DNA from: Octopus sinensis
Lineage: Eukaryota
Direction: 5' to 3'
Length of the DNA: 7,366 nt
Assembly: GCF_006345805.1 (NCBI RefSeq)
Contig: NW_021828878.1
Coordinates: 1 to 7,366, forward strand
Positions 5,362-7,366 of the stretch are shown here, in pieces (the first letter of the stretch is position 1; each line of letters opens with the position of its first letter). A program made the translations under genes and the position numbers. Under the pieces are notes generated by a model. The model ran no database searches and had not been told where the DNA came from. It worked only from the letters and a program-made list of their open reading frames with translations.

Positions 5362-5520
5362 CATATATATATTATATATATATATATATATAAGTTCAGC
5401 AAAAATTTAGATTCAAATGAATATGGTACTTAATTTAGATGCACCAGAATTTGTTATGGTGTTATCCATATAAATCCGTGGGGTGATTATAATCAAAATA
5501 AGCAACAAGAATGACTCCGG

Positions 5521-5612
5521 TAATTTGGTACGATCGTTCATACTACATCATTTTATTAAAGTTGTAAGTATTACAACAGCTTTAAAATGCTGAGCACTCA
5601 TCAGCCAAATTA
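5521..5612 (-). ncRNA. Type I hammerhead ribozyme-like motif, left-arm copy (C11.1 to U, one core A missing)
   Basis: The minus strand reads taatttgg CTGATGA GTGCT ...long hairpin... AGTAT GAA C GATC G TA ccaaatta. Stem I is a perfect 8 bp (5612-5605 with 5528-5521), CUGAUGA is at 5604-5598, and the predicted cleavage is between 5529 and 5528. Confidence 0.75.
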
Positions 5613-5625
5613 TAGAAAACCTCTA

Positions 5626-5718
5626 TAATTGGCTGATGAGTGCTCAGCATTTTAAAACTGTTGTAATACTTACAACATTTAATAAAATGATGTAGTACAA
5701 AACGATCGTACCAAATTA
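5626..5718 (+). ncRNA. Type I hammerhead ribozyme-like motif, right-arm copy (G12 to A lesion)
   Basis: Stem I is taattgg (5626-5632) with ccaaatta (5711-5718). CUGAUGA is at 5633-5639. Stem II is GTGCT (5640-5644) with AGTAC (5694-5698), extended by a long hairpin capped by gttgtaa-tac-ttacaac. AAAA at 5699-5702 sits where GAAA is expected. Stem III is A-C-[GATC]-G-T, and the cleavage triplet GUA ends at 5710. Confidence 0.75.
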
Positions 5719-5745
5719 CCGGAGTCATTCTTTTGCTTATTTTGA

Positions 5746-5749
<4 letters not shown>

Positions 5750-5793
<44 letters not shown>
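5750..5793. repeat. (TA)n microsatellite abutting palindrome P4
   Basis: Visible directly in the sequence. Confidence 0.95.
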
Positions 5794-5798
<5 letters not shown>

Positions 5799-5990
5799 CA
5801 CACATAATTACATATGTAAGTATAAAATTTGATTAGAAACATTAACTCGAGAAGTGATTAAGGTGAAGCTACCAGTTGTATTGTAATTGAAAAATCTAGC
5901 AACTTAAGAAAAATATGTGTGTATGTATGTGTATTATATGTGCATGTTTGTGTGTGTGTGTACACGCATGTGTATGAACGAGTGAATATA

Positions 5991-6708: not shown

Positions 6709-7366
6709 AGCACCATCCATTCGTGTCCGTTGCCAGCCTCGCCTGGCCCCCATGCCGGTGGCACATAGCACCATCCGTTTGTGTCCGTTGCCAGCCTTGC
6801 CTGGCCCCCATGCCGGTGGCACATAGCACCATCCGTTTGTGTCCGTTGCCAGCCTTGCCTGGCCCCCATGCCGGTGGCACATAGCACCATCCGTTTGTGT
6901 CCGTTGCCAGCCTTGCCTGGCCCCCATGCCGGTGGCACATAGCACCATCCTTTCGTGGCCGTTGCCAGCCTCGCCTGGCCCCCATGCCGGTGGCACATAG
7001 CACCATCCGTTCGTGTCCGTTGCCAGCCTCGCCTGGCCCCCATGCCGGTGGCACATAGCACCATCCGTTCGTGGCCGTTGCCAGCCTTGCCTGGTCCCCG
7101 CGCCGGTGGCACATAAAAGCACCATCCGTTCGTGTCCGTTGCCAGCCTCGTCTGGCCCCCATGCCAGTGGCACATAGCACCATCTGTTCGTGGCCGTTGC
7201 CAGCCTCGCCTGGCCCCCGTGCTGGTGGAACGTAAAAGCACCATCCGTTCGTGGCCGTTGCCAGCCTTGCCTGGCCCCCATGCCGGTGGCACGTAAAAAG
7301 CATCATCCGTCCGTGGCCATTTGCCAGCTACGTCTGGCACCTGTTGCAGGTGGCACGTAAAAAGCA
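6709..7366 (+). repeat. GC-rich 58-bp tandem array (11 complete units, truncated by the window end)
   Basis: The unit is agcaccatccgttcgtgtccgttgccagcctcgcctggcccccatgccggtggcacat. Units start at 6709, 6767, 6825, 6883, 6941, 6999, 7057, 7118, 7176, 7237, 7299 and 7363, and there are no unique spacers. Confidence 0.97.

Follow-up and report, generated by a model that had tools for sequence, protein, structure and literature searches.

How did two hammerhead ribozyme skeletons, each with a damaged catalytic core, come to lie head to head on opposite strands of an octopus contig, and can either of them still act? The window, by which we mean the whole stretch of DNA analyzed, is the entire 7366-nt contig NW_021828878.1 of Octopus sinensis, part of a eukaryotic assembly of 2.72 Gb in 13,516 contigs (GCF_006345805.1). 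A preliminary description, made from the letters of this DNA alone, had recognized the two skeletons and suggested a Penelope-like or non-autonomous ribozyme retroelement as their context. Based on comparison with the rest of the genome, we consider positions 5393-5745 to be, very probably, an inert and decayed insertion in a (TA)n tract, in which a Penelope-like retroelement (PLE) is represented twice by its 3' end, a reading that covers the locus as a whole.

The inserted element spans 5393-5745 and is bounded on both sides by (TA)n (Table 1). Within it, 5493-5745 forms a near-perfect head-to-head inverted repeat with its junction at 5615/5616, evident both in the sequence and from a repeat finder, which reported arms of 58 nt at 91% (I1) and of 32 nt at 100% (I3). 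The twin type I skeletons that the preliminary description had placed at 5493-5745 are indeed there, and that interval is correct for the inverted repeat; the whole element, however, reaches left to 5393 through a tail on the minus strand. The arm readings given earlier (TAC-AAAA-C on the plus strand and TAT-GAA-C on the minus strand) are exact, the cut sites predicted at 5710 and 5529 fall precisely on A17 of each arm, and the window lacks a reverse transcriptase (RT) open reading frame (ORF), as had been stated. Stem I had been described as 7 to 8 bp long, which holds for the minus arm alone, where an extra T gives a perfect 7 bp, but not for the main-family form of 4 bp, a bulged A, and 3 bp. 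Read as RNA, the 253 nt of the inverted repeat collapse into one hairpin of -179.6 kcal/mol (z = -34; shuffled sequences, -40). The right arm differs from the family sequence at 3 positions, including G12-to-A, and the left arm at 5, including C11.1-to-U and the loss of one A.

Table 1. Features of the insertion and of its (TA)n target in the window
Feature	Positions	Strand	Basis
(TA)n microsatellite, left half of the insertion target	5363-5392		Tandem Repeats Finder; (TA)n also flanks family copies elsewhere
100-nt tail (minus-strand reading, TTATAATCACCCC...GCTGAACT), by which the left arm has the long-form 3' end	5393-5492	-	BLAST of the tail to L001 1401-1500
Left arm, final ~123 nt of the element 3' untranslated region (UTR), dead hammerhead, minus-strand sense	5493-5615	-	96% identity to family sequence; model R1, 107.9 bits
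Left-arm details: C11.1-to-U 5540; one A of GAAA lost 5537-5539; A17 5529		-
Minus-strand hammerhead, CUGAUGA box (plus-strand letters, tcatcag)	5598-5604	-	Sequence
U-GAA (mutated C-GAAA; GAA 5539-5537), CGAUCG (5536-5531), and GUA triplet (U 5530) of the minus-strand hammerhead	5529-5540	-	Sequence, arm alignment
CCAAAUU of the minus-strand hammerhead	5528-5522	-
Right arm, final ~130 nt of the element 3' UTR, plus-strand sense, short-form end ...GCTTATTTTGA, dead hammerhead	5616-5745	+	97.8% identity to family sequence; model R1, 133.8 bits
Right-arm details: G12-to-A 5699; A17 5710		+
Stem I 5' strand of the plus-strand hammerhead	5627-5632	+
CUGAUGA box of the plus-strand hammerhead	5633-5639	+	Sequence; nearly invariant in family
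Rod-like helix II, 59 nt, of the plus-strand hammerhead, with apical GUUGUAA/UUACAAC hairpin	5640-5698	+	Minimum free energy (MFE) fold, pair counts, unrelated same-length helix II in other families
Mutated GAAA (AAAA 5699-5702), 2-bp helix III with GAUC loop (CGAUCG 5703-5708, within palindrome ACGAUCGU), and GUA cleavage triplet (U 5709)	5699-5710	+	Sequence; dimer cofold
CCAAAUU of the plus-strand hammerhead	5711-5717	+
(TA)n microsatellite, right half of the insertion target	5746-5794		Tandem Repeats Finder

The window does not lie alone in its genome. The 253-nt repeat, used as a query, found at least 2013 candidate loci in two groups: full palindromes of 79-92% identity and many single arms of 96-98% identity that read ...GUAGUAC-GAAA-CGAUCG-UA-CCAAAUU..., with an intact core. 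Single arms also occur on their own, at 98-100% identity, as the 3' ends of longer elements. A 32-mer probe spanning the GAAA box, with Y/R at its CpG, was matched exactly across the genome and gave 439 matches against 0 for the control; among the first 100 listed, 86 carry CG, 8 carry TG, and 6 carry CA. The ancestor TAC-GAAA-C that had been reconstructed from the two arms is thus a real family state. An intact copy lies, for example, at G000:C1:2583180-2583314. The absence of CGAAA from other copies, which had been named as a refuting condition, does not hold, since most of the listed matches keep it.

That these copies represent a hammerhead class is well supported by sequence comparison. 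Conservation was counted over 61 main-family arms, in which the variable fraction was 0.7% at core positions outside CpG, 6.4% at CpG positions, and 4.0% at all other positions; the core is less variable than the rest (Fisher p = 2e-7), and the CpG excess is modest (~1.6-fold, p = 0.017). The CUGAUGA box shows 3 changes in 427 cells, with N7 alone varying between families. The core as a whole (C3-U4-G5-A6-N7-G8-A9, G12-A13-A14, A15.1-U16.1, and H17) is kept by the family, and only N7 and H17 vary across families. A diverged pair in locus L047 has CUGAAGA, an N7 change only, together with a stem I that is wholly different and still complementary, and the family covariance model found a third family in loci L027 and L017 (GUUUUGG-CUGACGA-[52-nt helix II]-GAAA-CAAUUG-UC-CCAAAAU). 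Three helices surround the core, helix I being the open one, and 92-94% of their cells pair. Across the three-family alignment, which was fitted to the model and so favors structure, the paired fraction was 92%, both sides had changed in 14 of 31 pairs, and the covariation score was 0.261 against 0.122 for shuffles (0 of 500 reached it) and at most 0.064 for slid controls. The conserved core and covarying helices indicate that both window arms derive from a hammerhead with an intact core, as the preliminary description had supposed.

The distinguishing feature of the class is its helix II. In the main family, G10.1 pairs directly with C11.1, and the 59 nt of helix II form ~22 bp plus internal loops. 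A genome census for CTGANGA-N48-64-GAAACRATYGTH gave 10,653 matches against 8 for a reversed-pattern control. These matches comprise many families, in which helix II is unrelated and yet self-complementary (e.g., GUACGAG...CUCGUAC and GAUUCUUACCCA...UGGGUAAGAAUC) and N7 takes all four bases. Helix III lies within an 8-nt palindrome, ACGAUCGU or, in other families, ACAAUUGU. The 2-bp stem III with a palindromic loop proposed earlier gains a plausible role from cofolding: the predicted dimer has an 8-bp intermolecular helix III through ACGAUCGU and -48.8 kcal/mol, compared with 2 x -21.0 (-42.0) kcal/mol for two monomers. In the source elements, the ribozyme would probably cleave more-than-unit-length transcripts as a dimer through this helix; both self-cleavage and its dimer mechanism are predictions here. 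As a separate observation, AAUAAA occurs at 5679-5684, in the helix II 3' strand of the plus arm, 24 nt upstream of the hammerhead cleavage site and likewise in family copies, with AUUAAA in its place in some related families; it could be a polyadenylation signal or mere AT-rich sequence.

In hammerhead ribozymes, G12 is the general base, and G12 and the run A13-A15.1 are essential core positions. Since G12 is replaced in the plus arm and the minus arm has lost an A of the GAAA box, both window ribozymes are dead, and neither arm has the intact core of a type I hammerhead (RF00163). The reciprocal lesions rebuild an intact core as an ancestral sequence, as had been proposed, but the ribozymes are encoded on opposite strands, and no single transcript could therefore let one make good the defect of the other; RNA read through both arms would instead fold into a long double-stranded hairpin. 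The two base substitutions are CpG transitions, as had been stated, and CpG deamination may have caused the arm lesions. The argument for methylation that had been built on them is weak, however, because the family-wide CpG excess is only ~1.6-fold. We also considered a locus that is still a working ribozyme pair, its lesions tolerated or rescued in trans by dimerization with intact copies. PLE hammerheads do act as dimers (PMC4209133), and the intact ACGAUCGU could pair with another transcript. The lesions, however, fall on essential positions and are both minority states in the family, the arm differences from the family sequence (3 and 5) include further, neutral-looking ones, and any transcript across both arms would be locked in the -180 kcal/mol hairpin; a working pair is scarcely credible. 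The window locus is an ordinary dead member of its family.

How such copies reached their sites can be read from their ends. Family copies sit in (TA)n and have a fixed 3' end (...GCTTATTTTGA) and 5' truncations at many points, with lengths from 135 to more than 679 nt. The combination of fixed 3' end, variable 5' truncation, and (TA)n setting is the mark that target-primed reverse transcription leaves. There is also a long-form 3' end, situated 100 nt past the short one (TTATAATCACCCC...GCTGAACT). In the loci fetched from the genome, this tail follows a ...TTATTTTGA-type 3' region in 36 of 36 tail matches (3 of them partial or diverged) and runs into TA-rich repeat in nearly all of them. We considered whether the tail might instead be the start of a downstream tandem unit, since in a different family with a ~534-nt unit, described below, the tail plainly continues the repeating unit; among the 36 tail matches, however, none continues into further recognizable element sequence.

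Longer copies connect the hammerhead with a coding region. In L031, L042, L043, L047, and L048, the end of an ORF lies ~1.4 kb upstream of the 3' end in one continuous homology block; 36 nt separate the hammerhead from the short 3' end, and the stop codon of the endonuclease ORF is ~1.4 kb upstream of the hammerhead. Adjacent PLE ORFs, which the preliminary description had proposed to look for at other copies, are thus found, in the form of an ORF end that terminates with an endonuclease-like domain. Over 17,000 candidate relatives of this ORF fragment occur in the genome, in open frames that reach 922 aa; frames of 700-922 aa lie, for example, on C5, C10, and C1. Its sole close database relative is P0001 (64% identity over 75% of the query), which carries CNCRIKSKC, a fit to CxCX5C; in L047, a decayed copy, the linker's third C is replaced by Y. 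An exhaustive HMMER search returned 2102 homologues, and 40 aligned homologues give the linker consensus CNCRxKxxC, in which C-N-C is kept by at least 90% of the sequences, as is the third C. Pfam GIY-YIG was matched by 12 of 40 homologues (best E = 1e-4), and the long homologues P0058, P0007, and P0093 show a YRDD reverse transcriptase motif, then CxCX5C, and then the nuclease domain. Searches of solved structures with P0058 and with an endonuclease profile gave no informative matches.

These observations support the identification of the hammerhead arms as the 3' end of a PLE. PLEs of the Hydra clade are defined by a GIY-YIG endonuclease at the C terminus, preceded by a CxCX5C linker, by insertion into (TA)n, and by hammerheads that are always present; their RT has DKT and RWK motifs, their endonuclease lacks CCHH, and their hosts include mollusks (Craig et al. 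2021, PMC8557442). Judged by its endonuclease, linker, (TA)n target, and hammerhead, the element most likely belongs to this clade. The Penelope-like context suggested in the preliminary description is therefore sound as to the kind of element, but the arms are a twin 5'-truncated insertion and not a pair of Penelope-like long terminal repeats (pLTRs) around an ORF.

Two further observations concern PLE sequences of this genome. P0001 is annotated in RefSeq as "myelin gene regulatory factor-like A [Octopus sinensis]" and is made up of low-complexity, N-rich sequence and, after it, the CxCX5C linker and GIY-YIG-like domain of this PLE group; it is probably a misannotated transposon fragment, namely, a PLE endonuclease. 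Near family copies there are also ORF fragments of other PLE families (L003 103-687, minus strand; L029 3414-4004, minus strand; L026 6065-6550, plus strand), among them an RT fragment and endonucleases that combine a CGRxNCxTC (CX2-5CxxC-type) finger and an NIIYVIKC/YVG core. Several lineages of PLE are thus present in this genome.

Among close pairs in this genome, the head-to-head arrangement predominates. A census of the first 100 class matches on C1, with neighbors sought within 5 kb and 1.7% per motif expected by chance, gave 26 close pairs, of which 19 were head to head, 6 tandem, and 1 tail to tail. In the inverted pairs of L002-L016 the junction differs in each case, indicating that they formed independently and are not copies of one palindrome. 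All 19 head-to-head pairs examined (16 in L001-L016, plus L019, L026, and L027) have one, and only one, tailed outer end, the opposite one finishing with ...TTTTGA; this asymmetry may reflect the way in which an insertion's two ends are resolved by the PLE endonuclease and RT. Dual hammerhead motifs of PLEs on opposite strands, 100-700 bp apart, have been reported (Cervera and de la Pena 2014, PMC4209133), as have inverted 5'-truncated copies next to PLEs with the tail at only one end (Craig et al. 2021, PMC8557442). At L047 757-1323, a head-to-head pair of a ~25% diverged family (core CUGAAGA) and a main-family copy lie tail to tail in one (TA)n tract, and at L035 127-258 another diverged head-to-head pair is truncated inside helix II.

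A palindrome of this kind might also be a miniature inverted-repeat (MITE) or foldback DNA transposon, or a gene for a hairpin RNA or microRNA, with the hammerhead boxes incidental. The perfect long hairpin, the TA-rich flanks, and microRNA-model matches in the window speak for such an origin. Those matches came from an Rfam search of 5400-5850 in E-value mode, which returned only generic hairpin-like hits below threshold, the best being MIR8706 with 62 bits against 95; they are far below gathering and belong to unrelated families, as for any long hairpin, and a microRNA identity was rejected. The differing junctions and arm lengths of the genomic palindromes are unlike one DNA transposon, and target-site duplications are unreadable in (TA)n. 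Single arms at 98-100% identity end longer elements, and the conserved core and helix covariation are found within one arm. An origin as a foldback transposon or microRNA gene is accordingly very improbable.

A double insertion by twin target-primed reverse transcription is the most likely origin of the palindrome. LINE-1 insertions offer an analogy: in their twin priming and 5' inversion, reverse transcription is primed from each strand of a staggered break in the target, which leaves inverted 5'-truncated segments with a variable junction. Here, both nicked strands of the (TA)n target would prime reverse transcription, and two incomplete cDNAs would then be joined head to head with the element 3' ends outward. 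One cDNA would have begun at the long-form 3' end, giving the 100-nt tail, and the other at an internal UUAUAA-like site, giving the ...TTTTGA end. In contrast to LINE-1, both window arms keep the element 3' end and would thus represent two cDNAs, each started from a 3' site; the PLE enzyme is of GIY-YIG type and that of LINE-1 an AP-type endonuclease. The comparison is an analogy only. A snap-back (self-primed) origin of the palindrome is less likely: in the sense orientation, the 5' side of the right arm has 8-9 nt more than that of the left, a segment that simple fold-back of the left cDNA could not supply.

The arms could alternatively belong to a non-autonomous, ORF-less ribozyme retroelement (a non-LTR retrozyme; LTR, long terminal repeat) that is PLE-like only at its 3' end and is copied from circular or multimeric RNA. 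A different family of the same genome behaves in this way, having tandem ~534-nt units, each with a hammerhead, that are likewise inserted head to head in (TA)n, and a 2026 preprint argues for an origin of animal retrozymes from PLE pLTRs (10.64898/2026.07.22.740005). In several loci of the window family, however, homology is unbroken from the hammerhead to the endonuclease ORF, and there is a gradient of 5' truncation with no fixed unit length. Among the first 100 exact 32-mer matches listed, 8 pairs lie head to head, and no close pair has both members on the same strand (in tandem). The tandem, retrozyme-like arrays that the preliminary description had proposed to look for at other copies are therefore absent from the window family in that sample and present in the other one. 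We regard a retrozyme origin of the window arms as unlikely, and a PLE 3' end inserted twice as the better explanation.

The tandem family is the third family named above, with GUUUUGG-CUGACGA-[52-nt helix II]-GAAA-CAAUUG-UC in each unit. Its array at L027 131-2911 (G000:C2, ~177100430-177103210) has four minus-strand cores, and the three full units between them are 98.7-99.6% identical; the family is also present at L017 2125-2223. The array includes an inverted partial copy on the plus strand, both outer ends are in (TA)n, and they stop 125 nt apart within the unit, the same one-tail rule as in the window family. Its layout suggests either a non-LTR retrozyme or a PLE derivative that is not autonomous, with multimeric or circular RNA as the template.

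Several observations weigh against parts of the reading favored here. With respect to the ribozyme, a search with Rfam models, the check that the preliminary description had proposed, gave no match over the whole window at gathering thresholds, and no hammerhead appeared between 5400 and 5850 at E <= 10. For an intact genomic copy, Hammerhead_1 (RF00163) was the top Rfam match over its full length, but at 18.6 bits against a gathering threshold of 34, and it also ranked first for the ~534-nt family, at 30.0 bits; the shortfall is attributable to the penalty for the 55-nt insertion in helix II. In addition to the fitting of the three-family alignment mentioned above, the monomer hammerhead fold lies 4 kcal/mol above the MFE, the main-family stem I is weak, and some subfamilies have U-U at 10.1-11.1. 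With respect to the element, the YRDD evidence for an RT comes from long homologues and not from copies of the window family itself. Pfam found nothing significant in the family's two (decayed) endonuclease ORF fragments; RVT_1 matched none of ten long homologues, among which there was one weak GIY-YIG match. BLASTP of the endonuclease fragment against another PLE endonuclease of the same genome was not significant (E = 0.35). The tail of 100-125 nt exceeds the 30-40 bp of Hydra-clade PLEs (PMC8557442). Finally, template switching may have taken the place of twin priming.

Set beside known systems, the window family resembles published PLE hammerheads in several features. In the earlier reports (Cervera and de la Pena 2014, PMC4209133; Lunse, Weinberg and Breaker 2017, cited in PMC6765202), these have the same type I topology, 2-bp helix III, palindromic loop, and dimer form, and they likewise occupy a terminal position in PLEs, number thousands of mostly solitary or truncated copies per genome, and include close motifs on opposite strands (PMC4209133). 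They differ in helix II, which is 6-8 bp in the described ones (PMC4209133) and an imperfect rod of 52-64 nt here, and the octopus families score below the Rfam threshold. The long stem II, named earlier as a possible mark of an undescribed family, does mark a hammerhead class. Hydra-clade PLEs agree with the window family in the C-terminal GIY-YIG domain, CxCX5C linker, (TA)n target, hammerhead, inverted 5'-truncated copies, one-end tail, and mollusk hosts; in addition to the longer tail, the 3' UTR of ~1.4 kb is a point of difference (PMC8557442). The two core halves are 59 nt apart here, compared with the 7-17 nt searched by Craig et al. and the 35-50 nt of their eight "HHR_half_core" cases (PMC8557442). 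Animal non-LTR retrozymes (Cervera and de la Pena 2020, PMC7229834; preprint 10.64898/2026.07.22.740005) share type I topology, dimer-type helix III, and a repetitive noncoding context, and the sister family in L027 is of that kind; the window family, by contrast, is nontandem and continuous with an ORF-bearing element, and its copy consists of head-to-head truncated 3' ends.

Much of what the locus shows is already published: the presence of hammerheads in PLEs, their helix III of dimer type, truncated copies in inverted orientation, tails on one side only, and insertion into (TA)n (PMC4209133, PMC8557442, PMC6765202). The rod-like helix II of 52-64 nt is partly new, as a long-helix-II variant of a known association of ribozyme and retroelement. 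A search for literature joining hammerhead, Penelope-like, and octopus, which took in neither Repbase nor Dfam nor that paper's supplement, found only Craig et al. 2021. Tentatively, and with considerable doubt, the observations can be joined into a broader proposal: octopus Hydra-clade PLEs and their nonautonomous tandem derivatives may carry an undescribed hammerhead subclass, with a conserved rod-like helix II of 52-64 nt and a palindromic helix III of 2 bp, that numbers over 10,000 copies with intact cores and lies below the Rfam threshold and outside the published search descriptors for PLE hammerheads. In such a case, helix II might be a 3'-end recognition element for the RT, and the one-tail rule might record asymmetric two-primer integration.

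Apart from the insertion, the window contains two tandem repeats. At 6709-7292 there is a GC-rich 58-nt repeat (10 copies, 91% matches), found also at L021 5515-7131 and L026 3921-4555; it is a dispersed satellite that yields long spurious open frames (GWQRTRTDGAF...). At 297-941 there is a 39-nt repeat (13.7 copies, 89% matches) with an underlying 14-nt period and long spurious ORFs on the minus strand.

In sum, the window locus itself is junk, a dead fragment of a retroelement, and its value lies in the family to which it led. Rfam gathering thresholds and short-spacer descriptors miss a very large population of hammerheads in this cephalopod genome. For structure-function work, the family offers numerous naturally occurring forms of helix II in a dimer-type hammerhead, and its abundant head-to-head insertions, with their variable junctions and one-end tail, are a natural record of the mechanism by which PLEs integrate.

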